A stretch of 64,000 nucleotides of DNA from assembly GCF_000143415.4 (NCBI RefSeq), contig NW_003314281.1:1069584-1133583 (forward strand). The letters run 5' to 3'. The notes under the pieces were generated by a model. It ran no database searches. It saw only the letters and a program-made list of their open reading frames with translations, and had not been told where the DNA came from. The DNA is from Selaginella moellendorffii. Taxonomy: Eukaryota > Plantae > Lycopodiophyta. Numbering within the stretch: position 1 is the stretch's first letter; every line of letters starts with the position of its first letter. A program made the position numbers and the translations under genes. Below are positions 3,124-63,327 of this stretch, one piece after another.

Positions 3124-3214
3124 TTAGCAACCATCAATGGAAATATAATGTGATAATAAGTTCAACCTTTTAATGTTATTGTTTCCGAGATGGAATGTGG
3201 TTACCCTAGCAGCT

Positions 3215-4061: not shown

Positions 4062-4096
<35 letters not shown>

Positions 4097-4685: not shown

Positions 4686-4728
4686 AAACCACAGGCTCTT
4701 CGTCACCACATCCCGAGAGAGAGCTTTG

Positions 4729-6058: not shown

Positions 6059-6132
6059 TTCTCTTGGTATAAAAGAAAAGAGAGCAGCAAACTTTAAAAC
6101 TTTAAAGGAAAGTTGGTTATAGAGTTTTTTTG

Positions 6133-6562: not shown

Positions 6563-6886
6563 GTTAGAAAATGGTCAGATGAACAAGAAAAGAAAAAAAG
6601 AAAAAAAGATCAGAAATAAAAGGCTTCGATCACTGCTTATACTAAGCAAACGATGGACTTACACATGTCAACCCTGTGTATCTCACCGAAGAAACATTGT
6701 CGTGTTCTTTCGATTGATCGAGGCCAGAGTTCCTAAGTTTCCAAATTTACGTGATGAATTCCCGATAAGTTATAACTTTGTTCGTATTGCCAGAGCGATA
6801 GCATTACTTTCTCGAGAAAAACCAAAGTAAGATACAAGATAGACAAACTCTGCCATGTACCTGAGATCTCGCAGCGATGCTCTGGC

Positions 6887-8017: not shown

Positions 8018-8261
8018 CTTGAGAAGGAAAAACCCACCTTGTCCTTGCTAGATTATCTTCTCCATCGCTTACACTACACGCATGAACCCAAGCCAGTGCT
8101 CAGTCTGAATCGCAGCTAGGCCCAGCCGTCGTCGTACAGCATCTTCTTGTAGCCACCACAATTGACGCTCGCTGCTCTCTTTTGGTGACATCACCGGACT
8201 AGCCTAATGGAGAAAAGGAAAGTGGTGTTAGTAAAATAGTACAGGAAGAAGGTAACTCACC

Positions 8262-11935
<3,674 letters not shown>

Positions 11936-12085
11936 GGCAATGGGATGATAAAACCTAAGCCCGGGGACAATACCATTCAACCATCAAATTAATATTCTCT
12001 TAAGTTCTCTTATTAGTGGTAAGAATGTTTATCAAAACTTTGCTCCATAGCATTAGCTTTTATTCGCTCGTTTCTCTTCGCCCTT

Positions 12086-14195
<2,110 letters not shown>

Positions 14196-14409
14196 AGCCG
14201 AGGAGAGATGCGTCGCGCCCTACTCGAAGCTCTCCCTGTGTAGAATCGTCCTCGATTATACCTACGTCTCCAATATAAAAGGGGAAAAAATTTTCAAAGG
14301 TGGAGGTAGAAGCAATCCTAGCCGCTCGTTTGGATGCTCACGAACATTCCCATAAACCCTAATTTTTAGTCAGTCAACAAAAGGAGCTTTATTTCACTTG
14401 TAGTGACTT

Positions 14410-15248
<839 letters not shown>

Positions 15249-15359
15249 AGCGCTCGCTCCCAAGAACCCTAAATTTGATAGTGCATTCAGATTTAAAATC
15301 CAACGACGGAGATTTGTACCAGTTAATCGAACGGCCAGTATTCAATGGTGGAGATTCTT

Positions 15360-41330: not shown

Positions 41331-44300
41331 TGCGTACCAAGATTGATATTAGAGCCATGATTGTAGAAATTTGCAGGTACTACAGCAAACTCGCCAATAT
41401 GGTTTCTGGATTTCGTATGGTTTTTCATATGTTAAGTTGTATGGTTTTGGTTTACACATTTGGTATGTTTTTTAATATAAATTCATCATTACAAATAGAA
41501 ATTTGTACTCTAGTATTTTCTTACAGTTTATTTATAACTTAAATACTATTTATTTTTAATTAAATATAAAATATAATTTACTCTATATAGTTATTGTAAA
41601 TAGTTTTTTAAAACTCATATAGTATATAATTATTCATCTAGATTATAGTGTAAATATTTTTTGGTTTACTTAAGAAGTATATATAGAATATTCCTGAATA
41701 TTTTAGGATATTCTATCACCTATTCATTTAGATTAATCGAGTATTTATAATTTATAAATTTTCCTAGTATATTCAAGTTTATTAGACCATCTAATGGTTG
41801 ATATGCAATAATATTAATCTTGTGTTTATAATATATAAATATATTAATAATTATTTTTAAATTATATTAATAAATAATAATTCTAAATAGGAATAACACT
41901 ACTATTAAGCAAACTAAGAATTGCTGCATATTTCAGTTATTAGAAACATTGCACAATTTATGAAAGACATGGACAGAATTGACTACTAAAGAAACTATTA
42001 TTGTTTACAGGTGTAAATATTTTTGTAAAATTCATATACGCTATAATTATTCATAGAGATTTTAATGTGCATATTTATTCTTATCATAGTCCACTGTCTA
42101 TCCATATTGGGCCTAAGTTCTTTTATGCTCAATTTTAATAGATTTCCATTTAAAACAGTTTAGTTAACATCACTCAGCAAGAATTACACAGATGATCTAA
42201 TTCTAAGCATATCAAGTTCTTAGCGACTAAAATCTACATAATTTTGAACTATTAGAACCACTTTTGAAAATTGATAGTAAATTACATAAAAAAAACTATA
42301 GTCATAGTATGAAAACTATATGTATAATAAGATATTGTTGACTTGTGAAAAAATAGTACCTAAAAATTGATAGTTAATTTTAGCCTAGGGTTTAGTATGT
42401 TTGCAGATGTATTTTTAAAAAAGCCAAATCTTGAAGTTTTCCTCTTGTCCCACACCAGAGCAACACCTATGTCTAATTATAGAAATTGATGCTTAAAAAT
42501 GAGTACCACCCTAAATATGAACTACTTGTTTTGTTGTCTCATTATACCACTTACTTTAGCTTGGTTTATTCAAGTTCATAGTTAGAAAATTTCATGCCCT
42601 GAATTTCCCTCTTATAATATCTTTATAGAATTTGTGGACATCAGAAGAGACTCTCATACTGTCTTCATTTAAACCGAAAGAGCCAAGATTTCTGACTTGG
42701 TAAACCATGCTTCCTTTTGAAGACAATGATTGTTGATCACAGTTGATTGAGTTTGTTTCAAGAGCTCATGATTTATAACATAACCCAACTTGACCTTTGT
42801 TATTGTTGACCTAAAGCCCATAACTATAAATTTTCTTTGTTGACTAGAAATCATATACCTTGGGAATAACTGAGCACCTATTGCACTAGTTTGAAAAGCC
42901 ACAAGGACTAAATCTCTTGCACTTATTATGTGAGAAGGTGCCTTAACCTATTTATCCCTTGTTTGTAAAATGACTTGAAACTCAAACTCTATATACCTAT
43001 GGTTCCCTCCTTGTCAATCATCTAGAAGTCTACTCTACCCATCTCGTGCTGATAAATGCAATAAACTACAATACAAGTCATATGAAATCTATGCTTAGCT
43101 CTATATGTCTAAAATCACATATGATTTAGTTATTTACTTTCTGTGTCATTTTTATAACCTTTGCCACCATCACCAGCAACATTTCTACCATCTATTGTGG
43201 AGTTTTAGTTACCAAAAAACTCATAAAAGATTTATGTTATCTATGAAAAAGTAATCACTTGTTTAGGTTGGAGAGTTGAAAACTTTTTTAGTCTACCTCC
43301 CTTGCTTTGCTGTTCTATCTATTACTTTCAGATTGCATTTATTATCAATATGACATTGAAATAGCACATTCACCAAATAATTATCTAAAATATCAACACC
43401 AAATGAAACACAATCACTTCATTCTCCTCAATCTTTTTAGTAAGTTTTTCCTCTGTTATTTAGAAATTATTCACACCAAATGAAAAATAATATAATGGAC
43501 ATGTACCTTGAAATAGAAATAGATAGACAAGTTGGTGGAGCAACTTTACTACCTTCTATTTATTATATTTCTAGAAATTAAGGGTATATACTATTCTTGA
43601 AAGTTTGTCTTTCTAACCATCAGAAGTGGAAGTTCATTCTCGTAAAAGTCTAAAAATGTATTTTTTTCATTTGTTTTATGTTTATGAGGATTTCTTTATG
43701 TAGATCATTATCAGGAAATATTGTAAATGTTAAATTTCTAAAGGAATTCCTAGTTACCAGCTGAGATAAAATCTCATCAAGCTTTATTGGCCATTCCAGA
43801 GGTTAACATAGGTAGAGACCGAAATATAACAAGGCCTATTTATTCTCTTTGTTCTTAGATAATAACACAATTTTTTTCTTTGTTGATTTTTGTTTGAGAG
43901 AACTCTACAAACCTTTGACTAGCATTTTAGAACTTGATATTTTCTATTTTTAAAGTTGTATTTTGCAATTTTCTAGGCATCTATTTTCCTAGGAATTTCT
44001 TGTATTGTATATTACAGCCTTCTTAGCTTATGAGGAATTTTTTTCTTATAAGTTTCTTGTACTTTCATTGCAAGCTGATTAAAATAAACAACTCAAGTAC
44101 TTAGTTTGTGGCAATAGTCTTTACACAACAAGTATATGTTTGTACTTTAGAATTGCTTTGCACTTTTGGGGTTTTCATTATCAATCAGGAATGATGTTGG
44201 TGCAGGTTTGAGTAACTATATATAGTATGATCTGCTTGCAAAGTTTTCTTGTCTATGTCCATTTTTAAGAGCTGAAGATAAGCAAAACTTGTGGAGAAAA

Positions 44301-44841
44301 TTGGAGTAGATTTTTTAAATATCCCCTATATTGTGGGATATTATGTGAGTCAAGTAAGTATTTTAAGTAAGAATCTGCTATTAGTATGTAATATTAAATA
44401 TGACATTCATTAGCCTGTGTATGATGAGGCCAAGAAAATGTGCTAGAGATTTCTCTTGGAAAATGAGAAGTAATTATCCTAGAATTTATCCTTTTTTATA
44501 ATTTAGTTTGCTTTATAACTGTCTGAAGCAACATTCTTTGGCAAAGTTGGCTTGCATGAAACCATGAACTCAAATATAAAAATTCAATAATTATTTATTA
44601 GAAAATAAATTAATGATAATAATTAGTATATAATACTTAGTAGTGGTCTTATAAAAGAACACACACTCACTATCAAGTCTTTGAGAGTCAGCAAGTGTTT
44701 TTTAAGTTAAAACATAGTTTATATCTTTCGAAGAACAAGATTAGCTACACAATAATAATAATGACTTCAATTAAACTTAATTTTAAGTTTTATATTTTAT
44801 TCAATCATATCCATCTAAAATTATTATAACTAGCAATAGTT

Positions 44842-45316
44842 TTACACGATGCATGTATCTCCTACATATGCTAAGTTATCTTGCTCAATCCAAGTTCCTA
44901 TGTCAAAATGCACTGCAAAATTATTTGAAGGAGTTGAAAAATCAATCCAATCTATATACCATCCAGCATTAGATCCTGTATTATCATGTGATACTATAAC
45001 TTTACATATTTTATCATATTCTGATAGACATGTACCTTGAACATTGAATACATCAGTATTACAACGTTCAAAGTCATCATAATTTTTATGATCTATGTTT
45101 TGGTAAGCCAAAATGACTCCTGAAAGTGAAGTAAATATTATATCCACATTTGCATTAGTACCCGCTAACCAAACACATCCAGTTTTGATTATAATTTTAT
45201 ACTTACACTAAAAAAAAACATTAAGCTTGAAAAGTTTGAAACAAATTTACCTGTGCTAAAGAAATTTCAACATAAAGAATAAGATAAAAAGTTGGTAATA
45301 TAGTAAATTTCCTCAT
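44842..45316 (-). CDS. Small secreted PLAT/LH2-domain protein (2 exons, intron 45250-45208)
   Basis: MRKFTILPTFYLILYVEISLAQ|CKYKIIIKTGCVWLAGTNANVDIIF...DDFERCNTDVFNVQGTC...ICKVIVSHDNTGSNAGWYIDWI...FDIGTWI: canonical PLAT motifs (Y.I.IKTG, AGT, FER..TD.F, GWY). Confidence 0.85.
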
Positions 45317-45899
45317 CAAATTTCTATCAACTATTAAGATAATTTTAAACCTTTTTTACTTTGTAAATTATATATCCAAAACTTTTAAAAAGTTATACAT
45401 TGTGATGATCAATATAAAAAGTTTGATAACTTTAACTAGCTAAAATTAAATGTAAGTTTTATCACTACTTATAATAAGATAAAATATTATAAACTCCATA
45501 TGTAAGGTCTATAAATATTTGTACATATATACACTAATTATAGACAATCTATTTAGCATTGAAACTTGTTCCTGTATATAAGCAGGGGTCTAAACCCTAA
45601 TTAATATACTTATTCCTATATCCACATTGGTGGAAGTGAAAGGCACTATAATTTATCCTTAGAGGGTAAAGCTTTTTTGTAGTGCTTTGCTATAGTGTTT
45701 GGGATTATATTGTTATTTTCATGCCTTCATTCTTTTTTAGATCTAGATTTGTATTATCTTTTTGCTAGATATAGAACTCTAGTTATTGTTGTGGTTAGGT
45801 TTGTTATTCTATTTGATCTTTATTGCATTTCCTTCTACTATACTACATTGTCATCACAAAAAAGTATATCATTTGAGATTGTTGATGCTACTCCATTGT

Positions 45900-48800
45900 A
45901 TTGAGCTTTTGGTATTATGAAGTGTGATTATATTAGTGTTGTACCTCTTTAGTGTGTTGTTATCTCTAACTTCCATGGGATGTGATTATATAACTTTTTC
46001 TATTCTCAATGTCCTACCGTCTTTTATTAATGTGGAGTGTGATTGATTAGAGGGTTATGGATGATCCAATCTAGTTCTTAGAGAATGTTTACATCAAATT
46101 TATGGGAAGATGATATGTACAAGCTCAAATGGATTCTAGATTGTGATGAGGAACTTAATTATTATAGAAATAACTTTAGAGATAAGTTATAAATTTTACA
46201 GAGTAAGTGTTAGCTTTCACTTGCATTTCTGTCCTTGTTTTGCATCTGGCTTGGGTTTAAGCCTAAGCTCCATACCATGCTAATAAAGGAAGTACTCATA
46301 TTCTCATGTTAGGCCACCAATATGTTGAAATAACACTAAACCCTATTTAGCTCTATTTTACGTACTAATTTTAGCATCAAGACATTGGAAACTATTAGTC
46401 TTGATGTAAATAATATTGATAATTTGGTGCCTTTGTTAAGGAAATCTGGGCTTATAAGAAGCTCATGACTCTCCAAAGTTATGGCATTCCCAAGCTCATG
46501 GAGCATGATTATGGGATGGATTGACATGTAAAGATAATTTTAATTATTCTCATGCTTCAAGTTGGGCACTACATGTGAGGAAGACAATGGTAAAGAAATT
46601 GATCCTGGTCAGACCATCTTTGACCCTCTTTTCTAGCTCGTGTAAAGTCTTGGATGAAAAATATGACAAACTTTATGCAAAGAAGAGCAAATGTAAATTT
46701 GCAAAGTTAAAGATGAAATATCTAAGCCATATTATAACATCTAAGGGTGTCAAGACAAAACAACTTCAATGTTGCTCTATAACAACTTTAATTTTAGCAA
46801 TATTCTAGCAATAACTTTAACACTAGTAGTTGCTCCTTCTATTCAGCCTCAAGTTGTAGCGGCCTTGTGGAAGACACACATCAATAAGGTTAAAAAAGAT
46901 TTGGTAGAAGCATTGACAAAAAAGATAGGAGATATGCAACTTAATTGGATTTGAGGTGCTCAAAATTAGCCACAAGCAATGAGAGAACGTCAAAATGTTT
47001 GGTGTGTGAAGTGTAAAAACTATGGTCACTATCTTGTGCAATAAAGAAGACCAGCTTGTCAGTACTATGGACAAAACAATCATGCATTAGAAAATTGTTT
47101 TTATTAACCAGGAAGGAAGTAGTGACACCCTTTTTTCCAGCAACAATAGTCTTATATGCAACGTGCATCACCATCTGTATGCTTCCAGTAGACACAATTA
47201 TTTGTGGTCCCAAATTATCACGTTCAAATGCAAGCTCCTGTCCAATATTGGCCACAAACTCCTTATGATCAAGGAAATATGTTGCAACAATATACCACAT
47301 AGCAATCAAGCATTCTAGTATATGTTGTGACAATTATGCTGTAGCAGCAGTTTTAAGGGATGGGCAATGGATGAAGTCAAGGAGGTGGAAGAGGGCCAGA
47401 ATGCTATTGTTGCAAGGAATTTGGCCATATCCAAGCAAATTGTCCAAATGTGAAGAAATCAAAGGATTATTAGTTGATATGTGGAATTTGTGATACTTAG
47501 GGCCTCATCCTCAAGAGCAATGTCCTCACAAGCTGTAGCAAGACCATGGCAAACAAGTGGTCAACTTGCGAGTTGTATTTGTTCAACCTGTGGACTTGGA
47601 TAGGACTTTCTATAAGCTGGGAAAAAAGAAAGACTAGGCTTAGAAAAGTGGTCTCTGCAGCAATGAGAGCTTGTAAAAAAGTTGTAGTTAATTCAGTTTG
47701 GCTAGTGATCACAAACATGTTAGCCCCAGTCATAGATTTGGATTTGGCTGGGCAGTGGATCAAGAATTGTGCACTAAATGGAGGTAGTGGGGTGAATATT
47801 ATTCCTAACAAGATGGTGTATCAACTCAACTTAAGAGTGCTAATTCCAGTTCCTTTTCATGTTCGTATGCCAGATCAAAGGAGAGTCAAGCTGCTGGGTG
47901 TGCTCACAGGAACTCAAGTGGTGATAGTAGACATCCAATTTTGTGTGGATTTTGTAGTTCTCTAAATGAGTATGGGTGAGATGACTTATCTGCTTCTTCT
48001 AGGCCAGCTGTGGTTAATACAAGATAATGCTGTGAGTTACTGGCAAAAAGGATTGATGCAGATAATTGATGGAAATGTCAAGAGGAAAGTCTGAGCGAGA
48101 GCACGAGTTCTACCAAGGAAAATGAGGAAACAACTTGGGTATAGTATTCTTCCTTGCCAACTTAGGGTGATCTTGTCTTGCCACCTTTTGAGCATGATAC
48201 TACTAGCGATAGTCTAAAGCATTGGTTGGAGAGGTGATGTAGATTGTAGCATGGTTAAGGTTGAGTTTTCAGAGCCAACAGATGAGGAGAAGTTGCTTGA
48301 GTATCTAGAGCATTTTCAAGTTGTAGAGGTGGTAGAAAAACCATGGAAAATTTATGAAGAACCATAGAGAAGGCAAACAGGTTTATCAAGTCTTCAGAGC
48401 TAATGGATTTAGACCTTGGAATTGTGAAGGAGTCTTGACCAGTGAAGATAGGAGTAGAGTTGGAAGGAGAGTTAAGAGACCAATTTAAAGGTTGCTATAT
48501 GAGTATACATATGTTTTTATGTGGAAATATAAAGATATGCGAGCCATTGATCCTATGCTGGTTATCCATCGAATTCCTTTGATTCCTGGAGCTATTGCTG
48601 TTCATCTGTTAGGAAAAATACATGATAATAAAGAAGATAATAAGAAGATAAAATACAAGATAATAAAGACTCCCCTAGGGCTTATATTTCAGCAGTAACT
48701 ACAAATCACTCATACTGAGTGCGTTGGGCCTGTAGTAACTCCTCTATGATCACGCGTAAATAATAGTACCACACTTGACCACAGGTTGGACAGGTAGTTG

Positions 48801-50071
48801 GAATTTGCTGCTCCTCGATCGCATGCCTTATCCGCATGTTATTAGTAATGTGATCGGCGACGAGATCTCGACGGCCTATGGGAGGTCCCACCATCTTCGA
48901 GTAGAAAAAACTCAAGAACCAGAGAGAGAAAACAAGAACAAGAACTATAAAAACACTGAATGGCCGTGCCTAATTTTCCAACTACCAAAAACTTGAACAC
49001 CAACCAATGGTTGAGACTTTTCGAGTTAATAACTCTTCATCCACAACTTTGATTGACTTGATTTCACCACCAAATAATAAGATCTTCAACTTTATAGAAA
49101 AAAAATTCTCACTTCTGAAATTTATCACTTTCTCTCTCTAGATGGAATATTCTTAGGAAGCTTCTTTAGTGAGTTTCTTCATTTTTCACCTTTTTCTAGC
49201 TCAGAAATACATCAGTACTCACAAAAGCAACCTCAAGTGTGAAAATACAACCATATATATGGTTGACATCATCAAAGGCCTTATAGGACAAATTGACATT
49301 ATTCAAAAGTAGCGCAAGAGGAGATAGAGAAGTTGTTGCAAGTGGGAGTCATTTTCAAGGTGGAAATCAATGAGTGGCTTTTTCCTATTGTCATTGTCAA
49401 GAAGAAGAGTGACAATGCAACAATTAAGGATGGTTTTTCATTGTTATTTACTTATATAGTGTTGTATTTAGTGGTGGGGTATGAACTCTATTCTTTCCTG
49501 GATGGCTTCAATGGTTATAATTAAGTGCAAATAGCAAAGGAGGATCAACTAAAGACCACTTTTGTGACGAAGTGGGGGTGTTATGTATATAGAGTTATGC
49601 CTTTTGGCCTGTGCAATACTCATTCAGGATCTTGTTAAATCCATTTAAGTGTAGCTTTGGAGTGATGCATGGGGTGTTATTAGGTTGGATTATTTCACAA
49701 GACAGTTTAGTTATTGATCTTAGCAAGACCAAGTTGATACAAGCACTACCAGCTCTAGTGGACATCAGGCAATTACAAGCATTCCTAGGTCATGTAGGAT
49801 ATCATTGCAAGTTTATGCGGCGTTATGTGGAGAAATTTTTGCCTTGGACGGAGTTCTTGCCATGAGTGGACAGACCGCTGATAGCAAGCTTTTGAGGTGT
49901 CAAAGTAGGCTTTGGTCACAGCTCCAATTTTGAAGATGCCAGACTAGTCCCAAGATTTTTATGTTCATGTGGATGCTTTAGCAGTGGCAATTGGCTCAAT
50001 TTTATGCCAACCTATAAAGGACGGATGGGATCATCCTCTTGGTTATGATAGCCAGTAGTCTCAATAAAGCT
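45900..50071 (+). mobile_element. Degenerate Ty3/gypsy LTR-retrotransposon gag-pol remnants
   Basis: Zn knuckle ECYCCKEFGHIQANCP (~47400), protease-like ALNGGSGVNII (~47770), RT YSFLDGFNGYN*VQIAKEDQLKTTFVTKWGCYVYRVMPFGLCN (~49490-49617), LQAFLGHVGY, RNase H FYVHVDA (~49960). Many stops; left boundary approximate. Confidence 0.85.
48607..49209. mobile_element. ~600-bp solo-LTR-like insertion nested in the gypsy pol
   Basis: Begins TGTTAGG and is flanked by a CATC direct repeat (48603-48606, 49210-49213). Removing it restores ...GCT GTT CAT CAG TAC... The right end reads AATA, not canonical AACA. Confidence 0.55.
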
Positions 50072-50755
50072 CTATTTCGTTAAAGTGGGATTTATTCAGT
50101 AAAATGGGACTAGGTACAAATTTTCAAGTATTTGAAAATGACGTGAAATTATATGTTTTTTGTCCAGGGGCTAGACATATCTGGGGCATGGTGACTAGCG
50201 CGGTGACTTTGTGTCCAGACTGAGTCCATCTGGTTGTATAATAAATCTCATTGTCAAGGTGAACAAGCTGAATCTGAAGCTAAAGAAGAGCGATGGCATG
50301 CGCGCACACACTATTTGTTTGTTCATTGAGCGTGTGGTGAGCTTTCCAAGATGAACGTCATTCCTATTAGCCAGACATATAACTTAATGGTGAGAACATT
50401 TAGATATTATTCAATGTTATCTTTTTCTAACGAATCTAATTGTGAAGGTGTAGCAAAAGGCATTGCTAGTCTGGAGAAGTCATTTAACTCATTTGACCCT
50501 TAGTGTATTTTCATGAAACTAAATAACATTCATATTATTAAGGAATTTCTCTAGTACCTTTTTTTTACGACATAGAGGCTTGCATTTCTTTCAAAGGTGA
50601 TTTAGTAAAAGGCCTGAGGGCACATGCCATTCTATTTCTCAGACCAGTATTAAGATATACTAGTGCAAAGGGCCACATGCCATCACGCCTCCTCTGATTC
50701 AGATTCGGATTGTTCACCTTGAAATAAAATACATTAGAAACTTAGTAAAGGAATA

Positions 50756-53700
50756 TTAAATCTCACCTTGAACCCGGGTTATGAATGCTCTTGCTGCATC
50801 TCTTGCATGGTCTGGCAAGGTGATGGTGGCACTCTGCTTCTGCATCCAACCATGCACAACATTATCCACCGATATGCTCATGCTGGGATCCCTTGGATTC
50901 AGCACCCATCTCTTTTCTAGGCAATCCTTCGTATATCCGGAACTTGGCTTGAACCACTCCACAGTTACATTGAAGGAGTTAGTTTCTGCGTCCTCCTCTG
51001 CATCAGTGATGTAGCGCCCCACCCATATCATTTGTTTTTTATTACTGGGTCTGACAAGCACGACCATTCCTTTGCAGACTTGTACTGGATTGAATGCTGA
51101 ATCCGGCTTCTTGTTCCTCGGCCCACAATAGTGATCCTCAACATCGTTATCTGTCACTGCATTTCCAGAGGACATTGTTCCGCTACTATCTGGTGCTCTG
51201 GGTTCTGGCCAAAAGGACTCTTCCAATTCTTCATATACAACCGGCCCATTTTGGATAGCAAATATAATCTTCTCCCAGTATTCGAGCAAAGGCTTGCACC
51301 TCTTAAAATAGGATTCTCCACCAAACACCAACCCCCTCTTCCAGAAGGCAATATGCTGTCTAATCCCGGCCACTATACTTTCCTGGTCTTTGAGTCCATC
51401 CGGGTGCATCGGCCGTGGGGAACCCTGAGGAATCATAGGTTCCCCAGTTATGGGATCTCTCTTGAAGAGTTCAATGCCGTCCACTGGCAGCCACACTGTG
51501 TCCCATTCTCTCATCTTGTACCTCATCACTGGAGCACCGTCACGCATGCTGAAATGAAACTGAAGAGGCTTGGAGTGGCCAATCAGCGTTTCGGATCCGT
51601 CCCTGATGTAGCCTCTTACAAACCCCTTAAAGTCTGGAACCTCTGTCACAAGTGCAGCTTCAACAGTGCCTTTGATGCAATTTTGGAATTCATCGTAGAG
51701 TTGTGGGAGGGTGAGGACATTGGATCGCCGGAGGGACTCTGCCAGGTGACTGAACATGGCATCGATGTCTTCATGAGTGTGCCCAACCATGAGAAAGCCA
51801 AGTGTAACCGTTTCAAATATGCCTTTGGCAACAAGCATCGCCAAGTACGCGAAGACGTACATGTTTTTGTTCTCACTGCCAGCATTGTCTATTTGGAGCA
51901 GAAGATGGGGTGGAAGGCCACATCGGCCGCAAGAACTTCCTTGAGATTCTGCTTCGTTTGGATGAGGCTGTGCATTCACCGGGCGACCAGCCTCGTCGGA
52001 ATGGCATGAGGCCTCACGTGATAACCCTACAATCTGACGGCCAACATATTCACTGGGATGGCATGGGGCCCCACGCGATACTGCAAGCCTTTGCTCCTCC
52101 TCCAGCTGAACCCTGTATGGGGTTCGATCGACAAGGGCCTTATGCAAGGGTTGGCCGTTCAGCTCAGTCTGCGCACTTTGCAGAGACCTTAAGTGTTTTG
52201 CTAGGGACGCAATCATCATGTTTGCACCCCCGCCACCCCATAGAGGTACAAAGAAGTTCCCATAGTTCTGGGCACCATGCCCATGAGCGATTATGCCAAA
52301 CAGAGACACAGGCAGCTGCATGGATGAAGAGATTGCCTTGGGGGCAGGATTGAGTCGAGGTAAGCACGTCTTTTTCTGGTCCATTTTGTCGTGGATGATG
52401 CAGAGGTAAGAGTCAGGTCTCTCCATGGAGAGAATCCTGTTATGATAATATGTAGTCCTGCAGCTTCTCTGCTCGATGTTGTGGTCGAGCCGCCTTCTAA
52501 CCAACGTCTCTCGCTCTTGAGCGCTGCAAGAATTCTTCGACAAAGCCATTTTGATAGCAGTGCACTCGTCACACTTTGAAAAGCTGGAGTACTTTCCTAT
52601 ACTCACATCCCTGAACCTGTTGCTCCACAATCTACTAAATCTAGATTGGCTCAGCTTCCTGTAGCCATTACTCTGGAGTTCCCGATTCACATCTTCCAAT
52701 ATGGCCCCCTTGGTATACATGGAAGGGAGAACTCATTGGGTGTCTCGTGTTCCATCTTCCAAGAGGCGGGTTTTATGTGGTTGCTGCTTGCTACATGTCT
52801 CGACAAACCTTTTGAAGATTGCCTCTCCATATACAACATGACCCCTGGTTTTGTGCGTACCGTCGTTCCCATGGACTGCCTGTTGAACCCTTTGTTCCTC
52901 GAACTCAGTTTTGATTCTGTAGAATGTGGTTCGAGGGACTCCATAAATGATTCTCCATGCTTTCATGCAGACCAAACCCCTCTGGAAGACCATGCCCCCC
53001 ACCTGATGTTCTGAAGCATCAACAGATGACCGTAATGCCTCATACACAAAATTGCGAGCTGCCTTCCAGGACAATGTCTTGTATCTTGCTCTCTCCTCTT
53101 CAATAGCATCCCAATCAGCATGTTGACAGCACCTCCTCTTGCAACAAGCAACTGTCGAGACCATTCGAACCTCCATCGCCATTTTCTGCCTTTTCGGTTC
53201 GTTGCTCAGATCCCTTTGGCTGCACTGTAGGAAGGTGTACTTTCTTTTCCCATGAAGAGATGTTCTGTCATCAGTTGTAGTGGTGTTTGATTGTGAATCC
53301 TTCACATTCTCAAACACTAAATGCCTCAATTTCCACCGCACAATGCTTCCAATAGTCAGACTGTTTTCTTCTGTATCAACAACCTCTAAAATTGCAACTC
53401 CAATATCATCCCAGCCCAATTCTTGATTAGCAACCGCATCTCTTGGATCGACAACTGTGGCTAAGCCCTCAGCTACCACCTCCCCCTCGGGGTTGTTTAG
53501 AAACACCTTTGCCTGAATCCATGTAGCACGGTTCTTAAGATCCACGGAGGGAACATGCGTCGCACTTGCGCTGTCCCCAACATCTGCTTTCTTCTGCAGA
53601 TTTTTCAAGGCAACAACAACATTTACCCCGACGACCATCTCTCCTCGTTCAATAGCGACCACATTCCCATCGAAGACAGTCTCTACTGATATAGCAGCAT

Positions 53701-53821
53701 TGCCTTCCCCAAGCCTTTGACAGTGTATAACAAAGTTCCGATCCATAGACACAAGGGTCCCTTTTGCAACTCTCTTCCCACCATTCAAAATGTAAACCTT
53801 TTCCCCAACCCTGAAGGCCAT
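50756..53821 (-). pseudogene. Sola-like DDD transposase (1,021 codons) interrupted by one in-frame TGA at 52735-52733
   Basis: ORFs 53821-52733 and 52720-50756 share a frame (...RDTQ*VLPSMYTK...). Motifs: CCKRRCC, FSKCDEC, IIHDKMDQ, LLLQIDNAGSENKN and FLMVGHTHEDIDAMFS. Confidence 0.8.
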
Positions 53822-54174
53822 TCTGAAAGTGCAGAAAAGAAGTTAAGACCATACAAAAAATGATTGGAGAATGGCCTAAATCATAACATACCAAATAGCA
53901 TGAGGCCACATGCCATTATTCAAACATGCTATTGACACCCACGTGAAATTTCGCATTCACAAAATTGGCATGAGGCCTCATGCCATTTTGATATACACAC
54001 AGCTGCAGGCAAGTAAAAACATACATGACAATACGCTAGCCATGAAATTGCAAGGGCCCAAGATGGCATGTGGCCTCATGCCATTTCTAAATGTGGTCCT
54101 AAACCATTCCATGGTGAACATACCAGGAAGCACAAGTGCCGAATATCAAGAGGAAGCGGTAGCCACACCAAAGA

Positions 54175-54310
54175 CAGTGCCGCTCGCAACACCGCAACTA
54201 CTCGTAGCGCCGCTCGCAACACCGCAACTGCTCGTAGCGCCGCTCGCACAAACTGCCACTCGCATAAACTGCCGCTCGCAATGGCGCTCGCAATGCCGCA
54301 ACCGCTTGTA
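54175..54310. repeat. GCCGCTCGCA-based tandem repeats (30-bp unit) upstream of the transposase
   Basis: gccgctcgcaacaccgcaactrctcgtagc occurs twice, plus further gccgctcgca units. Confidence 0.8.
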
Positions 54311-54620
54311 GACGCATAAACCACAGCTCACAACGCCGCTTACACAAGCAGCGCTCACTGCGCTCAGTGGAACCAAGAACACGGCGCACAAAAATGATAG
54401 ACCTAGGAATGAGTTCGAGAATTCAAAAATAATACACGCTTGAACGTCACATCAAATCCTCTGACAAACCAGATCTTATGATTCCTCTGACAAATTTCAA
54501 ACTGAGTAGCTTCTAGACTTTGCTGTCGGAGGTTGAACTTTGTCACATCATGTCCTTGCCTCGATCCAGCTGTGCCATGTCAGTGATTCGAACTTTGCCA
54601 TGCCATGTCAGCGATCCGCG

Positions 54621-56462
54621 CCAAGATTATTCGCCGTGTAAAGGAATAATTATGCTGTGTGTGTACGTCCATTTATGGCAATATAAGGCCACATGCCATT
54701 CAAAGAATAATGCTAGTCGAGCATCTTTTGGTGCATTTTTGGGTTCAAAATTGCATGAGCCCACATGCTATAAAGTTTACCTGTACCAAAAATAGAAACA
54801 GCTTTATTTACTTGGGAATTTATATGGCTGAGGCATTTTTAAACTTACAAACACATGCCCTACTTACATTCCTTTGGTTGCTTAAAATTCAAAAATATTA
54901 TAAACCTTTCTTTTTGCATTTTCAATGTTTTCAATTATGGTTTTTGATTTTCGCAGGACCAGCCTAGTAATCTATTTGCATCCTGTCATGTTTATAGCTA
55001 GCTTTCGTTTGTCCCCTTCGCTAGCCTGAGATACATCTGCTCGGCATCTGCCTCTTACAGCATTTGCCCAGAAAGGGCATCTTTCTTCACGCAGCATTTG
55101 CCACATGTTTAGGGTTAGGGTTTAGGGTTTAGGGTTTAGCAATTCAGTAGCTTGATAAACATGCAAATACAGAACTTGATACAAAATCCTTTGATATGTC
55201 ACAATGCCCCTAGGACCATAAACACATTTCAATAGAGAGAGTCCTTTCATTTCATAACTCCTTACGTAGATCTTGGTGAAACCAGAGTTAGTGAAGTTGG
55301 TTTCTTGTGATCCCGCATCTGATTGTGATGTCCCTTTGCAGTGTCAATGGAAAGGTCAATGCACACCAAACTGTAGAATCTTGGAGCAAAATAACGGTCG
55401 GATCTATGGCAAATGCCCCTGAAACATTGTAAGGCTCGTGTGGTCTCATGTGGTGTCCGATCAAGATGCTTCTTTGCAGGGTCATCAAGAAGGACATTGT
55501 ATACCATTCTGTAAAATCTGGTTGCGATCTAACGGTTGGATCTCCAGGAAACTCAAAATAATCTCGCGCGTGTTAGAATATTCTAGGAATATACTCCTAT
55601 GTGCTCCAAGATTATTCGCCGTGTAAAGGAATAATTATGCTGTGTCATTTATGGCAATATAAGGCCACACGCCATTCAAAGAATAATGCTAGTCAAGCAT
55701 TTTTTGGTGCATTTTTGGGTTCAAAATTGCATGAGCCCACACGCTATAAAGTTTACCTGTACCAAAAATAGAAACAGCTTTATTTACTTGGGAATTTAAG
55801 TGGTTAAGGCATTTTTAAACTTACAAACACATGCCCTACTTACATTCTTTTGGTTGCTTACATTCCTTTGGTTGCTAGCTTTCGTTTGTCCCCTTCACTA
55901 GCCTGAGATACATCTGCTCGGCATCTGCCTCTTACAGCATTTGCCCAGAAAGGGCATCTTTCTTCACGTAGCATTTGCCACATGTTTAGGGTTTAGCAAT
56001 TCAGTAGCTTGATAAACATGCAAATACAGAACTTGATGCAAAATCCTTGGATATGTCACAATGCCCCTAGGACCATAAACACATTTCAATAGAGAGGGTC
56101 CTTTCATTTCATAACTCCTTACGTAGATCTTGGTGAAACCAGAGTTAGTGAAGTTGGTTTCTTGTGATCCCGCATCTGATTGTGATGTCCCTTTGCAGTG
56201 TTGATGGAAAGGTCAATGCACACCAAACTGTAGAATCTTGGAGCAAAATAACGGTCGGATCTATGGCAAATGCCCCTGAAAAATTGTAAGGCTCGTGTGG
56301 TCTCATGTGGTGTCCGATCGAGATGCTTCTTTGCAGGGTCATGAAGAAGGACATTGTATACCATTCTGTAAAATCTAGTTGCTATCTAACGGTTGGATCT
56401 CCAGGAAACTCAAAACAATCTCGCGCGTGTCAGAATATTCTAGGAATATACTCCTATGTGCT
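54621..56462. repeat. Internal tandem direct duplication (54621-55605 and 55606-56462) between the two transposon genes
   Basis: Both units start ccaagattattcgccgtgtaaagg and end atactcctatgtgct; paired ORFs 55262/56119. Confidence 0.92.
55108..55139 (+). repeat. Short interstitial telomere-type repeat (TTTAGGG)n
   Basis: tttagggttagggtttagggtttagggtttag. Confidence 0.85.
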
Positions 56463-56885
56463 GAAAATGGCATGCAGCCCCACGCCATTCAAGAGATAAC
56501 GCCAGATGATGCCGAGCATTTTTTGGTGCATTTTTTAGGATCAAAATTGCATGAGCCCACATGCTTGAACGTCATCCTCTGACAATTTATTTAGCTGAAC
56601 ATCTGGCATTTTTGGAAATACAAGATGCTTTGGAATATCCAATCATGCATGGTATAAATATAGCGAGGGTATTAAATGATATCCCAATCATGATCTTTCT
56701 TTTGGATTTCGCGTGCATGCAGTCCGAGGAATGATGACGTTGCAGATTTCTTTTGGATTTCACGCATGCGCGCGCCGATCCAGAAATTAATGGTGGCGCC
56801 CAAGTCCGAGAAATGATGACGTGGCGGGATTACCAACCGTCGTGACATTTCGCGCGTGTGAGGTTAGGTTTTGCATTTTGCTTCG

Positions 56886-57060
56886 TACTCGCGCTCGCAC
56901 ACTCGCGCTCGCATCGCGCTCCCACTCGCGCTCGCATCGCGCTCCCACTCGCGCTCCCACTCGCGCTCCCACTTCTCTACAGGTTTCTCGTGTGCATCGG
57001 CGTCCACTCGCGCTTGCATCACACTCGCGCTCGCATCGCGCTCGTGTGCATCGGCGTCCA
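56886..57060. repeat. ACTCGCGCTC(G/C)C-based tandem repeats upstream of the cargo gene
   Basis: About 10 imperfect units of (c)actcgcgctc(gc/cc). Confidence 0.8.
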
Positions 57061-57263
57061 CTTCAAGACACACCCAGTTTGTAACTTCGCCGCCAACTCC
57101 GCCGCCCACTCCGCCACCCACACGCAGCCCACTTGGCGTCTCGGGAGATTTCAGCGCCACTCTCCAACTGTAAGTGGCAGAGTAGCCTTGCTGCTACGAT
57201 CCGCTGCACACACAGTGCACATTTGCCAGCGAGTCCGGTTGTCACGCCTCCATTCGGCTTCAA

Positions 57264-60200
57264 ATGGTAAGTCTTTTAGGCCAAGTAGAAAATGGCATGA
57301 GGCCACATGCCATTCAGTAGCAACATTGGCATGCACTGATTGGGCTCTCGAGTGCAGTCCGGTTACAGATGGCGTGTAGCCTCACGCCATCTTAGGATGC
57401 AGCCTCAAGACATCTGATGCAGTGGTGAATGGCGTGTGGCCTCACGTTATTTCCAGCTACTAGCTTTTCATCTGTCAGCTCTAATTGTTGTGCATTTCTG
57501 AACAGGCGAGGAATTGCGTTCTTCTTCCAGCCACTGTCAATGTGGATGCAGAGAAGGGGGAGGAGCTCACCAGTTGGACTTTCGGGATGGAAGGCGAGGA
57601 TCTGAGGCTGTACAACACAGATGGTGGGAGAAAAGAATGCATGGGGATCCTCATCCAAGTGACAGACACTCCATGCAGTTCCATGCAAGAATATGGACTG
57701 GCACTTGTGGTAGAGACAGCGTCTGCCTTCAAGATCCACCTTGCACATCCTAGCGGCTTCCCGGAGGGGGGCAGCGGTTATGAGGAATTCCTAGAGGGAG
57801 CTAGGGAGAGGTTGTCCAGGAGGCCCACAATTTCAAAGACGCTGCGGGTCTATGAAGATCACATGGAATCCACGGACCTCACCTACGGCGATGTTCAAAA
57901 ACTATATTCCAACATTGAGCTGTTGAGAGTGACTCCAGTTCGTGAAGCAAAGGGGAAGGGGGTCGATCTGGAAACTACCTCGAAGCAGAAAAGGGTGGTC
58001 AAGCTCAAGCCGACGTCCGACTCTCCTGCTCCAAAAAAGAAGCTACTCAGTGATGCCATTGCCTCGGGTTCGAACACTACACCCACCAAAAAGAAGAGCC
58101 GCAAAGAGCAGAAAGAGCAAGAAGAGGCAGCAAAAATTGTCGCAGATAATAGTACTTGTTACTATTCCAACAAAGTATATACAATCGACGTGAGCCGTAT
58201 CGACATCCAAAGCAAATACAACCACAAGCTAGTATCTGATGAGTGGGTGGAGAAATTGAAGCAGAAGATGCTGGCAAGTCCAGTAACACCCGACATCACA
58301 GACGTGATCCCCTACTACCAAAAAATGAAGGGCGAGATGAGGTTTCCAGACTTGATCAATAGGAAGGTGTTGGACGATCAGAACATCCGGTTCTATGTCG
58401 TCTCCGGGCAGCATTCTAGCTTGGCGATGCAAGAGATAGTTGTGGATATTATGGTGGGCGAGGAGGTGAAGAAAGTCTTCAAGACAAGAGTTGTCCGCCT
58501 GATAAAAGGCAACTCGCCCCTCCGATCTATCATATACATCTCCCACGCGCAGAATGTCAAGCAAGAAACGTGCTACAAATCGGGTCTGCACGAGACATTG
58601 GCACGAACACGGAAGCTCTGGGTTCAACTGAAGAAGCCACAAAAACCAGGACAAGGACGTGCACTAGCAACTAGCGCCTGGCAGGTAAGCCTCATTGTAT
58701 GTGGCATAGCATGTGGCCTCACGCCATTTCCATTGCAGGAATTCTCGAGTCTTCTCTCGAAAACACTGGGGGTCAATGACACACTCAGCATCCATAACAT
58801 TCTACTCGCGACAAAAGTTGTTTTTGACAAATGGGTAGATGTGCTGAGGAGGTACCATGACGGGGAGTTGCCAAACTCAATGGGTGTGGAGGACGGCCGG
58901 AAGCCCAATGATTTGAAGCTCAACGCCTTGCGTTTCTCGCGGTCTCTAGACGACGACGACCTTCTGACAGTGGCTAATGCTCTTCTACGTGGTGAGGTTA
59001 TCTTCAACAAGACCAAAATGACTCCCGGCCATATTGTGACATACGAGGACTTGTGCACGACTCTGAGAGCTCGTGCGCTATTGAAGGATTGGATCTTCGA
59101 GCAAGTGGCCGTGGAGAGGGTGAGCATCGACACCACGCAAGAGATGATGGAAGCGCTGGAGTTGTCAAATGAAGACATCGACGAGTACGTGAAGGGGGCC
59201 CCCAAGTTCATCGATCTGCTGCGGGATGCCACGAAAAGTAAAGCTGAGAAGTTGGATCAGTATCCAAATTTCATTAAGATTGATGTCGACCGCCGGCTTC
59301 AGAAACAGCTCGACCCCGCAGTAGAGGCCTATCGAGAACCTTACCGGGTATACTTGAATTCGGATGAGGATCAAAGGTGGAGGAGCATCGTTTCCCGCGG
59401 AGATGAGCAGGTCAAGAACATCTTTTGTGTGATGGACTTCACAAACGAGGAGATCACTCATGCAGACGAAGTCAGCTCCATCATTGACTTAATGGTGGGA
59501 CTTGCGGAGGTGGAATCTTCAGTCCACTATATGATCTACGACTTCGAATCCTATCACAAGTTCTGGAAGGCCTTGAACGAGGTGAAGGCTCGGTTGAAAG
59601 GCAAGGAGATGCGGGAGATCCATGGGATAATGGCTAAGAAGAAGATACCGACGAATGTCCGCATCTTCACACTCGCCCTTGTTATTGGTCCTGCAACAGA
59701 GTGGGACTGGAGTGACTTCCCAGCTTCGTTCGACAAGGCCAATCGAATTGATCTGAGGGAGGTCAATTTACCCGTGCCTGAGGAACTGAAGACGGCTATG
59801 GAGCTTTCGAATCCAAAGAAAGCTCCAGGTGCAGCATGGGAAATGCTCAGCTGGGTCTTCAACGCAATAGCGGGTGGGTCACCTGCTTCCGACTCCAAGG
59901 GCAAATGCGTTGTCGAGTACAACTGCGGCGGACTATTCTTTCGAGCCGCACTACTCAAGGGTGTCCCGTGTGTTGCGGTGACAAACTCCATTGAAGAGGT
60001 GACTTCAATGGAGCATATAATTACAGTTGCCAAAGAAAAACAGTATCTTCTCTGCGAACCTGGTGAGTACGCACTTTAAGTTTAAATATTATCTCACAAG
60101 CTCTGTATGCAGGAGCGTGGCCACCCCCAGATGCTGAAACGGCGTTAACAGCTACTGTTGAAGATACCCATGTTGGGCCGAGCTCACAACCTGCACAAGG

Positions 60201-62886
60201 TAAGGTCACGTGAGGCCTCACGCCATTTTGATTATAGATCGTTGTGAATATTCAGACACGAGGACTGAAAAGCGCACTGGTGGCGCATCGAAGAAGGACA
60301 AACAGAAAAGCAATAGGAAAAAAGGAGGTACAAATTATATTTGCAATGGCGTGTGGTCTCATGCCATTCCTTGCAGGAGAAACTTCTTCAAAGGCAAAAC
60401 AGGCAAGCACCAGCCAAGCTCAAACTGACAGTGGTCATAAAAAGCGAAAGCACGTTGGACAGTCGTCGAGATCAGAGGCGTTTGATTCGAAAAGGAAGAA
60501 GGGCAACGAAAAGATGATAGGTAATGCCTCGCGGTTATGGCGTGTGTGCTCATGCCATTCATTGCAGATCAAGGGCTGAGTGAAAGCAGGCAGTCACCAC
60601 CTCATGACTCAGATTCCTATGGCGGACTCCCCTTCCCCAATCTCAATGGAGAGGTACAATGGATGAGGGAAGCTTTTCAAGGCAGGGCCACGTTTTTCTC
60701 ATCTCGTCGTCTTCGAAGGGTGCAAGAACGTGCAGAAACCATGTTAAGACAGTCGGGTGAGGATACGGTCCTAGGTCACGCACTAAAACAGGCTATGGAT
60801 GTCTTGTATTTTGAGATGGAGACTCGGCCAGATGATTTTCCCAAGATGGTCCTGGAAGAACAAGCCATCCAGCCTGAGCAGCCTATGGAAGAAATGCAGG
60901 AGGGGGATGAGGAGCCAGAGAAAGATAATGAGCAGGAAGAGCAGAAGGACGAAGAGGAGGACAAAGAAGAGGAGGATGAAGAAGAGGAGGACGAAGAGGA
61001 CTTGGATGGTCCTCACAATGGTGACGATCACAATAACGACGACGACGATGATGACGACGATGGCCAGCCTGAGGTGGCCAAAGAGCGGCGGAGGAAGGTC
61101 ATACAAGACAAACCATCAGGTAAATAATAATACATCCATTCCTAACCTTTTACCATTTCTAACATTGTCCATGTAGGTCGCAGAGCAAATGGTAAGTAGA
61201 GATTATTCAGTTGAATTTACAAACTCTAGCCTTTAGTGTCGAGGAAGGATAGTGCCAAGCAAGGGTCGAAACGTATGTCCAATCCTTCAGAATCAGCAGT
61301 GCGCCCAAGTGATATCGGTCCTAGTTCCTCAATAGCAGTTGATGGTAAATACAGTATAGTCGATTCAATGTGCTAATGAGTTTGTTTTTAGTAGCACGGG
61401 AGGATACCATCTCAATCGAAGGGAGATATTTGGACATGCATATGGATCCGCCAGTGGACTCTACTTGGCTGCAAGAGTCATCAGAGCTGGTGGAGGCTAC
61501 TATACATATCAACGCCAAGCAAGCTGACCACGCTCCACTTGATGCTGCCCATACCACTGAGTCAATCTTGTCCACGTATCCAACTGACGGTGACCAGGCG
61601 CCATTGGACCCACATGAGGCCGCCCCAGCCGCCGAGCCGGTCGTATCCTCATTTCCAACGGACTCAACGTGTGCCCAATCGTCTGACTACGTGCCGTTGG
61701 AACCTCCCTACACCGCCCCTGCTGCCTGTTCGGTCATGTCCACTTTGCCAACGGAGGCACCAGCTGAAATGGCGTGTGATCACACGCCATCGGAACCACC
61801 CCATGCCACTGTTGAGCCAGTTGTACCAGAGTCTACAGCTGAAATGGCATGTGCCCACACGCCATCGGATGCGATTGACCCCACATTGCAGAGGAGAGTA
61901 TTTCCGCCCTTCACGTTTCCTCGACCAAAACCCTCTCAACGACCATCGGGAGCAACATTCGCTAATATTGTAGATGGTAAAATTAACTTGTACCATTTTT
62001 TATGCTGACGCATTTCATTTCAGAGTCACGGCGAAGGTACTGTATCGTTTTTGATCTGAACGGTGTCCTTTTCTCCCATGAGCGTGGCTCGTCCTCGAAT
62101 GTCATTGCACCCTCCAAAGCCTGCGGTCGCAAGTTGGTCAAAAGAGACAGATTCACATTAATCACACGGGAGAAACTGCGGGATCTAATAATGACCATGC
62201 GACACTTAAAACAGAGGGCCGGGTTCAATTTGCAATTGGGAGTTTGGACATCCATGATGCGCCACAATGCATTAACGTTGCTACAGATGATGCACGATCA
62301 GACGCGAGTAATATTACCATTTGACTTTCTCCTAACGCAGGAGGATTGCTTGACTATGGTCCATGTGAGGGGTAGCAAGCCCATCTTCGTCAAGCCAGAG
62401 GCTATAGTGATGAACCGGACTGCTAGCTCAAGTGAAATCCTCATCATCGATGACTCGCCGATTAAAACTGCAGCGAACACGCACACATATGCAGTGCACC
62501 CCATCTCTTGCAGTATGGAAACTAGGGAGAAGAAATCGTATGTTCTGGGGGACCTTGCAAAACGGCTTGGAGCGATGGTGATAGAGAACCGGCCAGTCCA
62601 GGAGGTGGCTGCAGAAATCAACCAAATGGCAGATGGAACGGTATATCAGAAGCCATTTGATCGGACAGACACCAGTCATCATTTATGGCATGTATATTGT
62701 CTAGCCAAGCACTATCCGCATCTCCATAATCTGCTCAACCGGATGGGTTCTTCGACCACTGAACATGAGCGTGGACGTATTAGAGAAGAGATGGCATTAC
62801 TATTGGGTTTAAATCCTGATAGTGTGGAGAGTGATGAAATTCCAAGATTATTGTATAGGCGTTGGAGGCAAAAAATAACAGTCTGA
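57264..62886 (+). CDS. Transposon cargo protein, ~1,640 aa: ParB/Srx-like domain + degenerate DNA amino-methyltransferase-like fold + acidic/Pro-rich linker + FCP1/NIF-type HAD phosphatase
   Basis: Eleven exons (57264-66, 57506-58684, 58739-60062, 60113-60199, 60256-60327, 60377-60520, 60568-61119, 61177-61191, 61237-61344, 61395-61976, 62024-62886), all with GT-AG introns, sum to 4,929 nt in one open frame. Motifs: FYVVSGQHSSLA; GKCVVEYNCGGLFFRAALLKGVPCVAV; IVFDLNGVL...LGVWTS...ILIIDDSPIK. Confidence 0.72.
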
Positions 62887-63327
62887 GATGGCATGTATTT
62901 ATTTAAAAATGTAACTTATTATGGCATGGGGTTCCATGCCATTGTATTAATATTAAAAGACAATTCTTTGAGAGGATTTGCATTATACTAGAAGTGTTAC
63001 AGCATGTTATTGGAAGTCTACGAAGTTGTTTTATTAATAATGGGAAAGTAAAGATTGAATGGGGACTTGGGCTCCACCTAGACTCGGAGCAACTGAGCCA
63101 ATATTAAAAGGATGGAAAGAAATTGGACGACGATGACAAGGAGAAGAGAGAGGTGAAGCAGTGGCAGGGGGAGGAGAAGTGATTGAGTAGACATTTCCTT
63201 GTTTAAAATAAAATGGCATGTGCCTCAATGCAGTTGAATTTTGTTATATTTATATACTATATAAAGGTTTGGAAACCTTATTTTACAAGTGGGATAATGA
63301 CAATTCCCACTTTAACGAAATAGAGCT

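Follow-up and report, generated by a model that had tools for sequence, protein, structure and literature searches.

The stretch of DNA analysed here (the window: 64,000 nt of Selaginella moellendorffii, assembly GCF_000143415.4, contig NW_003314281.1, positions 1,069,584–1,133,583 of the forward strand) contains a giant transposon in which a transposase on the minus strand and a large accessory gene on the plus strand are arranged divergently between terminal inverted repeats (TIRs) of 19 bp. The left TIR (50072–50090, plus strand) and the right TIR (63305–63323, minus strand) both match CTATTTCGTTAAAGTGGGA exactly, with 0 mismatches between the ends, and they are the sole two matches to this sequence in the window even when up to three mismatches are allowed (0.01 expected). 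The element measures 13,252 bp between its outer TIR ends, and the inverted repeat as a whole reaches 27 nt at 96% identity (50067–50093/63302–63328). The strandless tetranucleotide AGCT abuts the left TIR at 50068–50071, as a putative 4-bp target-site duplication (TSD), and recurs beside the right TIR at 63324–63327. As these flanks are palindromic, a 4-bp TSD and an extension of the TIR read alike in a single copy; a TSD longer than 4 bp is excluded by the fifth base, which is mismatched as a direct repeat. The identity of the TIRs, together with the open frames that they enclose, implies that the insertion is young. We hold the structural description of the element and of its accessory protein, as given below, with high confidence.

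The transposase is represented by two open reading frames (ORFs) on the minus strand. The C-terminal ORF (50756–52720, 654 aa) carries the DDE-type core and matches Pfam DUF7869 (E = 2.9e-43), a domain also carried by its nearest ESM Atlas clusters (0.94); bacterial ISAzo13 DDE transposases are found among the structural neighbours of the top Atlas cluster, not of the window protein directly. The N-terminal ORF (52733–53821, 362 aa) is homologous to the Riccia element described below at the matching place (E = 4.5e-15). The two ORFs are 12 nt apart and perhaps are joined by a short intron, for which there is only a weak 63-nt candidate (52732–52794). The transposase and the accessory protein showed no similarity when their N-terminal domains were compared. 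The Sola superfamily is characterized by 4-bp TSDs, TIRs of 11 bp to >1 kb and sizes of 2 to >15 kb, and is present in mosses (PMC10741241); perfect 19-bp TIRs and a length of 13,252 bp fall within these ranges. That DUF7869 corresponds to Sola1, a group with a DDD/DDE RNase H-like transposase core, is suggested by analogy with the published brown-algal element Sola1-1_Ec32, which has the same accessory-gene layout (PMC12477816). A first-pass annotation, made from the sequence alone, had proposed a Sola-like element with perfect 19-bp TIRs and AGCT on both sides. The ends were borne out by the exact-match search of the window, and the placement agrees with the TIRs, the 4-bp flanks, the size and the host group (PMC10741241) as well as with the layout of the published Sola1 element.

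The accessory gene extends on the plus strand from an ATG at 57587 to a stop at 62886 and, when spliced in silico at GT-AG sites, encodes a protein of 1,621 aa in ten coding exons (57587–58684, 58739–60062, 60113–60199, 60238–60327, 60377–60520, 60568–61119, 61177–61191, 61237–61344, 61392–61976 and 62024–62886). The plus strand holds an ORF of 864 aa plus several other ORFs, and the gene model is the path that minimises intronic bases, the minimal-intron path having given a meaningless skip. No internal stop interrupts the frame across the ten exons, and the predicted introns are 38–57 nt long. One of them (58685–58738; 54 nt, in frame, WQ|EF) coincides with a splice position in the RefSeq model of the Selaginella homologue XP_024528744. 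From its N-terminus the protein comprises a beta-rich domain, a ParB/Srx fold, a helix-turn-helix (HTH) domain, a methylase-derived domain, a long disordered linker and a C-terminal NIF domain. The low-complexity linker exons (60113–61976, plus strand) are basic, then strongly acidic, then Pro/Ala-rich, and give weak low-complexity Pfam matches only. The first-pass annotation had described a fully open, divergent gene of 11 exons and ~1,640 aa; the open and divergent frame stands, whereas the count comes to ten coding exons and 1,621 aa, a difference that stems from an upstream, probably non-coding exon and from ambiguous splicing at 60200–60376. The motifs that it had quoted are present where it had read them.

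The ParB/Srx-fold N-terminal domain (58160–58570, plus strand) is followed by a helical domain (58739–59300, plus strand). From an alignment of 23 rows, AlphaFold2 (AF2) modelled residues 1–160 and 190–380 confidently, with pLDDT values of 80–92 for the former, as also over the ParB/Srx-fold domain, and of 70–90 for the latter, as also over the helical domain; a single-sequence AF2 model of the 864-aa ORF had a pLDDT of 32 and was unusable. In a Foldseek search of the PDB, the top three and most of the best matches were Noc, ParB, pNOB8 ParB, KorB and PadC. On VIA realignment, the 14 top rows were all ParB-family chains (Z 8.4–11.2), the closest local fit being 7bm8_A, Caulobacter ParB (Z 10.9, root-mean-square deviation 2.2 Å over 97 residues). 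Below them stood sulfiredoxin, SerK and SbnI, all with the same fold (Z 6.5–8.0), and then unrelated chains (Z ≤5.2). The alignments to pNOB8 ParB, KorB and Caulobacter ParB span 172–204 residues and extend to model residue ~304, which indicates that the helical domain corresponds to the ParB HTH DNA-binding domain. In agreement with these matches, eight of the ten rows of an ESM Atlas shape search were clusters that bear the name ParB or contain ParB_N, HTH_ParB or KorB. The model thus provides strong evidence for a ParB/Srx N-domain joined to a ParB-type HTH. At the level of sequence, Pfam ParB_N (PF02195) gave no match at E ≤10 for 14 family members, and none was obtained by profile against PDB sequences. 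The GxxR/GERRxRA motif of bacterial ParB, whose arginines contact the phosphates of the nucleotide, is represented in the aligned family by an invariant SGQHSxxA, which keeps the Gly, His and Ala and replaces both Arg positions; an invariant Asn and two invariant Arg are also present, and the invariant R110, N132 and R151 might compensate for the missing arginines. Among the structural neighbours of the model in AFDB are many Chara braunii proteins, one of them named Helitron helicase-like, and proteins of Nematostella, a sea urchin, mussels and a sponge, and these predicted structures suggest a wide, largely unannotated eukaryotic ParB-like family.

The next domain (59342–60062, plus strand) bears a motif IV remnant at 59423 and a motif I-like VVEYNCGG at 59909, and we conclude with moderate confidence, from aligned sequences, that it descends from a beta-class N6/N4 DNA methylase whose DPPY has been lost. 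Orthologous exons of Riccia and Calypogeia retain a near-canonical NPxxKP, a helix and (I/V)LDFFSG(G) (LDFFSGG, VDYFSGG, ILDFFSG). PF01555 is the top Pfam match in three of these orthologous ORFs (E = 0.0011, 0.0017 and 0.23), in each case over the part of the profile around motif I at its end, and at scores (19.4, 18.8 and 11.8 bits) that are all below the gathering cut-off of 26.7 bits. When seven family members were compared by hhalign with eight bona fide beta-class methylases (YhdJ of E. coli plus seven from phages), the block from NPxxKP to motif I was aligned (P = 3.8e-5, probability 71%), so that the (H/N)PxxKP helix, motif I (DPFxGSG) and the motif II strand find their counterparts. 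Significance was reached only after the orthologous exons and the eight-methylase template had been added; an earlier, poor alignment of 7 rows gave no significant match to YhdJ alone. The 240-aa segment taken by itself has N6_N4_Mtase as all of its named ESM Atlas feature neighbours (0.89, a lead-level score), and the AFDB neighbours of the whole model, mostly from Chara braunii, include two named DNA methylase N-4/N-6 that align over the full length of the model. This descent, along with the published proposal for algal relatives (PMC12477816), would favour an active enzyme that marks its own transposon by N6-adenine or N4-cytosine methylation, as proposed for the Ectocarpus Sola1. Such an activity is nonetheless very unlikely, as the catalytic motif IV, (D/N/S)PP(Y/F/W), occurs in no land-plant member aligned, its position being occupied only by a hydrophobic strand ending in Asp (VMDFT, IADLR, FLDVT, FADFA). 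Motif I of the window is moreover eroded further (VEYNCGG versus LDFFSGG in Riccia), and no member reaches the Pfam cut-off. The domain is probably non-catalytic in land plants.

At the C-terminus lies an NIF/FCP1-SCP-type phosphatase-like domain of the haloacid dehalogenase (HAD) fold (62024–62620, plus strand), which matches Pfam PF03031 at 27.3 bits against a cut-off of 21.8 (E = 3.3e-6). A profile of three family members has UBLCP1 (3shq) as its best solved chain (E = 0.026). Like FCP1, SCP and UBLCP1, the window copy has readable HAD motifs II (WTS) and IV (IDDSP), whereas its motif I is DLNGV rather than DxDx(T/V); the corresponding residues are DLDDI in Diphasiastrum and DVDYC in Riccia, and the Asn of DLNGV may be a private mutation of the window copy. 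To our knowledge, fusion to DNA-binding modules is no feature of the known FCP1/SCP/UBLCP1 family. Each of the domains named in the first-pass annotation is thereby retained: the ParB/Srx core by AF2, Foldseek, VIA, the Atlas shape search and the family alignment, the last of which also displays as SGQHS the predicted exchange of Arg for Ser in GxHR; the beta-class methylase-like region with degenerate motif IV by the orthologues and the profile comparison; and the FCP1/SCP-type HAD domain by a PF03031 score above the Pfam cut-off. The ParB-type helical DNA-binding domain that follows the N-domain was absent from that description.

Relatives of the accessory protein are found in lycophytes and liverworts. 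When 1.84 billion representatives were searched exhaustively with phmmer, 17 weak matches were returned, of which two, to bacterial RTX and GAP1 proteins, were false, whereas the named matches came from Selaginella, Riccia, Calypogeia and Diphasiastrum; low-complexity words swamp homologue searches with this protein without bringing new relatives. The window protein gave no ParB or methylase match in Pfam, PDB sequence or PDB profile searches, tblastn against phages yielded chance tail-fibre matches only, and a search of viral contigs for a related locus found none. Bacterial contamination, or the recent horizontal capture of a phage ParB-methylase, was rejected on the grounds of the ten exons with plant-type short introns, the intron position shared within Selaginella and the relatives across land plants. 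In Diphasiastrum, an annotated protein (P0017) joins the SGQHS domain to NIF (E = 7.7e-6), and the genomic locus (L004) presents ParB-like, methylase-like and NIF exons in that order. Calypogeia has ParB-like, helical and methylase-like exons, again in order. In Riccia sorocarpa, a 16.8-kb element (L005; CM100797.1, locus 317–17126) has the same divergent layout as the window. Homologues of both window transposase ORFs lie upstream on its minus strand (E = 4.5e-21, 2.5e-9 and 4.5e-15), and its accessory gene is on the plus strand, the layout being shared with the window at 20–36% protein identity; a first gene (P0016) is followed by a same-strand gene with NIF, and an ORF between the two carries the methylase-like block. 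The element is bracketed by 36-nt inverted repeats that are 92% complementary and 16.7 kb apart. The architecture repeated in Diphasiastrum, Calypogeia and Riccia, together with the divergent layout and internal palindromes of the Riccia element, argues from sequence that the gene is an integral and ancient accessory gene rather than a recent capture. The first-pass term 'cargo' is therefore misleading for a gene that stays beside the transposase in a liverwort element at such low identity. In Selaginella moellendorffii itself, another relative (L002, 10001–11425) has no ParB N-domain; its sequence starts at the end of the ParB-like domain and retains both the helical and the methylase-like part. 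Its neighbours are ordinary host genes (ArfGap, VQ), the 21-kb locus examined contains no transposase, and the gene may be a domesticated or orphaned remnant.

Thirteen copies of a 22-bp palindrome, ATGGCRTG-N6-CAYGCCAT, are distributed from 52058 to 62942, all inside the element; at ≤1 mismatch the 13 matches compare with 0 expected, and none occurs elsewhere in the 64 kb. Most copies reside either in the short predicted introns, a little before the 3′ splice site, or in the space separating the genes. Two are found within a coding exon (61769–61790 and 61844–61865), where they read as EMAC(D/A)HTPS, so the site is not strictly intronic. Six tiny predicted introns (57267–57317, 57352–57395, 58685–58738, 60200–60237, 60328–60376 and 60521–60567) consist of little beyond the splice sites around one palindrome placed just before the 3′ splice site, an arrangement that recalls introns created by the insertion of small palindromic elements. 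The Riccia element L005 carries a different palindrome, GGGACGCGTCCC, in 27 copies that are all between its inverted repeats (0.03 expected), and a second Riccia locus (L001, 2619–12971) and a Calypogeia locus (L006, 10500–15351) have their own repeated palindromes with arms ACCTCACGC and CCTCGAGA, respectively. Four of the related elements examined (the one in the window, L005, L001 and L006) thus possess an internal palindrome of their own, and in the window, L005 and L006 one copy is located in the intron directly after the ParB-like exon. The feature is conserved and its sequence is not, which would look like the pattern expected of a co-evolving protein–site pair; the pattern does not in itself identify the binding protein.

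The spacer between the divergent genes (54618–56400) includes a duplicated segment of ~0.9 kb (repeat families D1–D5, spacing 857–985 nt) whose copies are 96–98% identical and which contains degenerate forms of the palindrome (ATTGCATGAGCCCACATGCTAT). Immediately upstream of the insertion, at 42000–48000, the G+C content falls to 0.27–0.37, compared with 0.45–0.56 elsewhere in the window.

Taking structure and mechanism together, we consider this locus to be, somewhat more probably than otherwise, a recently active and now silent two-gene TIR cut-and-paste transposon, most likely of Sola1 type, that encodes a self-targeting accessory protein. On this account, a dimer of the ParB module would bind the element's own palindromes, much as ParB binds parS, and the bound protein would then coat or bridge the 13-kb element. 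The tethered phosphatase-like domain and methylase remnant could act upon proteins at the element or do no more than bind them, the most plausible target being the C-terminal domain (CTD) of RNA polymerase II. The outcome may be a tuning of the element's transcription, splicing or silencing, or help in assembling the transposition complex on a very long substrate. A comparable idea of self-binding has been proposed for Sola1-1_Ec32 (PMC12477816) and for PAG3 of the red-algal Plavaka elements (10.1101/2025.02.11.637652). We advance the self-targeting mechanism, taken by itself, as tentative. Its wider form, in which land-plant Sola-type transposons would carry matched pairs of a ParB-HTH protein and an element-specific palindrome of ~12–22 bp that change together and deliver a CTD-phosphatase-like domain to the element's own chromatin, is best treated as speculative and rather unlikely to hold in full.

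The palindromes also bear on a simpler role, that of a pure transposition co-factor which, once bound to them, would bring the distant TIRs together by condensing or bridging the 13-kb element, the enzyme-like domains serving as scaffolds with no epigenetic or transcriptional role. Such a protein would be comparable to TnpA of En/Spm or to the Myb-like second protein of PIF/Harbinger. It is established that proteins of the ParB family condense and bridge DNA, and DNA transposons whose second gene encodes a DNA-binding protein are familiar; both facts count in its favour, as do the spread of the palindromes along the whole element and the damaged catalytic motifs of both enzyme-like domains in the window copy. 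We nevertheless judge it unlikely. The palindromes are not concentrated near the ends, unlike the usual sites of co-factors, and relatives of the window copy are better preserved, the NIF domain keeping DxD in Diphasiastrum and Riccia and methylase motif I being near-canonical in the liverworts, which points to retained ligand binding or activity rather than to a mere scaffold.

A number of observations weigh against the reading of a self-targeting accessory protein in a recently active element. The palindromes could instead be transposase sites or RNA hairpins. CTP-dependent clamping as in bacterial ParB is doubtful with the GERR arginines replaced. The methylase assignment rests on the orthologues, the window sequence giving no Pfam methylase match, and over this part the AF2 model is unreliable (pLDDT <50). 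The general acid/base Asp of the phosphatase-like domain is Asn in the window, so that this copy may be catalytically weak. The Riccia element is itself decayed: its transposase contains stops, a Pfam search with it did not find DUF7869, and no clear TSD is present. In two RNA-seq runs of the species, of which ~12% of each was read, 5 and 0 reads were obtained and no spliced read or joint. The accessory gene was also compared with contigs from other runs of the species that diverge from it by ~1%; as these contigs are unspliced, they represent DNA. The exonic differences comprise 9 synonymous and 26 non-synonymous changes (N:S ~3:1), and by this count the window copy shows no sign of selection.

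The same comparison bears on the fate of the copy. Among the transitions listed between the window and the contigs (57300–62700), 27 of 29 are T/A in the window against C/G in the contigs, and the cytosines concerned are mostly in CG or CHG context. This one-sided deamination signature suggests that the window copy is cytosine-methylated and decaying; if the contigs represent the family majority, then the window copy would have gathered private C-to-T changes of the cytosine-methylation type without selection. Decay of this type fits the RNA-seq silence of the copy. The seemingly neutral N:S ratio, the lack of expression in the RNA-seq sampled and the occurrence of a related Selaginella gene among host genes, in a 21-kb locus where no transposase was found, could also be read as signs of a Pack-type passenger, that is, of captured host gene fragments without function for the element. 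We regard this as extremely unlikely in view of an open frame of 1,621 aa over ten exons, a multi-domain architecture shared by four other land plants, a placement with respect to the transposase that Riccia keeps at 20–36% identity and an analogous gene in the brown-alga Sola1 (PMC12477816).

The closest published parallel to the window element is the 21.5-kb Sola1-1_Ec32 of an Ectocarpus survey (Genome Biol 2025), in which a ParB-like plus N4/N6-methylase gene lies on the strand opposite to the transposase; relatives of this accessory gene in green and red algae are mentioned, and the protein was proposed to bind and modify its own element (PMC12477816). Both are giant TIR DNA transposons, the window element being smaller (13.3 kb), and the likeness of the proteins is one of description: that of Ectocarpus has 1,104 aa, two named domains and a recognisable methylase, whereas in the window motif IV is lost, the methylase escapes Pfam, an NIF/FCP1-type domain is added at the C-terminus and the host is a land plant. 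PAG3 of the red alga Bostrychia, encoded by a giant Plavaka (CMC/EnSpm) element, likewise fuses an N-terminal ParB-homologous domain to an enzyme domain directed at chromatin or DNA, and inverted-repeat arrays were proposed as its sites (bioRxiv 10.1101/2025.02.11.637652). It differs in belonging to another transposase superfamily and in its effector, a 2-oxoglutarate (2OG)-dependent oxygenase rather than a methylase remnant and a phosphatase; its repeats form tandem arrays beside the gene, whereas those of the window are dispersed and mostly intronic. With these two systems already described, the earlier statement that the combination had no description does not hold, although no mention of the phosphatase fusion was found in the literature searched, whose coverage lay outside subscription journals. 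What is new here is the occurrence in land plants, a deeply conserved association with the transposase, the catalytic loss of the methylase, the NIF domain and the palindromes, which are intronic and specific to each element.

Phage and prophage ParB_N + N6_N4_Mtase fusions are the nearest named clusters to the window protein by language-model features, and they share with it a ParB N-domain followed by a beta-class methylase in which motif IV precedes motif I. They are, however, ~400–480 aa long, retain an intact DPPY and lack a HAD phosphatase, and no similarity to the window protein was detected by BLAST, phmmer or Pfam. Several eukaryotic methylases have been traced by Iyer et al. to phage ParB-terminase loci (PMC4738411). 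The bacterial ParB, Noc and KorB clamps have in common with the window protein the fold of the N-domain and HTH, along with short palindromes (parS, NBS, OB) as counterparts of its candidate sites. The window protein departs from them in its replaced GERR arginines, in having no ParA partner and in its eukaryotic nuclear setting, and it gives no evidence of the C-terminal dimerisation domain of bacterial ParB. VANC of VANDAL/Mutator, TnpA of En/Spm and the TET/JBP genes of KDZ/Plavaka are element-encoded accessory proteins as well, which recognise short motifs over their own element or modify its chromatin. Their folds are unrelated to that of the window protein, and anti-silencing, experimentally shown for VANC and put forward for the window protein in the first-pass annotation, is here only an analogy, in a copy that is silent in the RNA-seq sampled and bears a mutation signature of the methylation type.

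Fusions of transposon-encoded ParB-like proteins to domains that modify chromatin or DNA have come to notice only recently, in brown and red algae. The element described here extends them to land plants, with a transposase partnership that appears ancient, and adds a previously unreported effector, namely a phosphatase-like domain from the family whose enzymes act on the tail of RNA polymerase II. The internal palindromes of four elements provide a concrete and testable candidate for the protein–site pair. If the pairing is real, such transposons would exert private control over RNA polymerase II transcription, splicing or silencing of their own genes, and a bacterial segregation module would have been rebuilt into a eukaryotic cis-targeting device that is conserved from liverworts to lycophytes. 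Genetically tractable plants among the liverworts, mosses and lycophyte relatives may offer a route to its roles in protection from silencing, in gene regulation and in the transposition of large elements.

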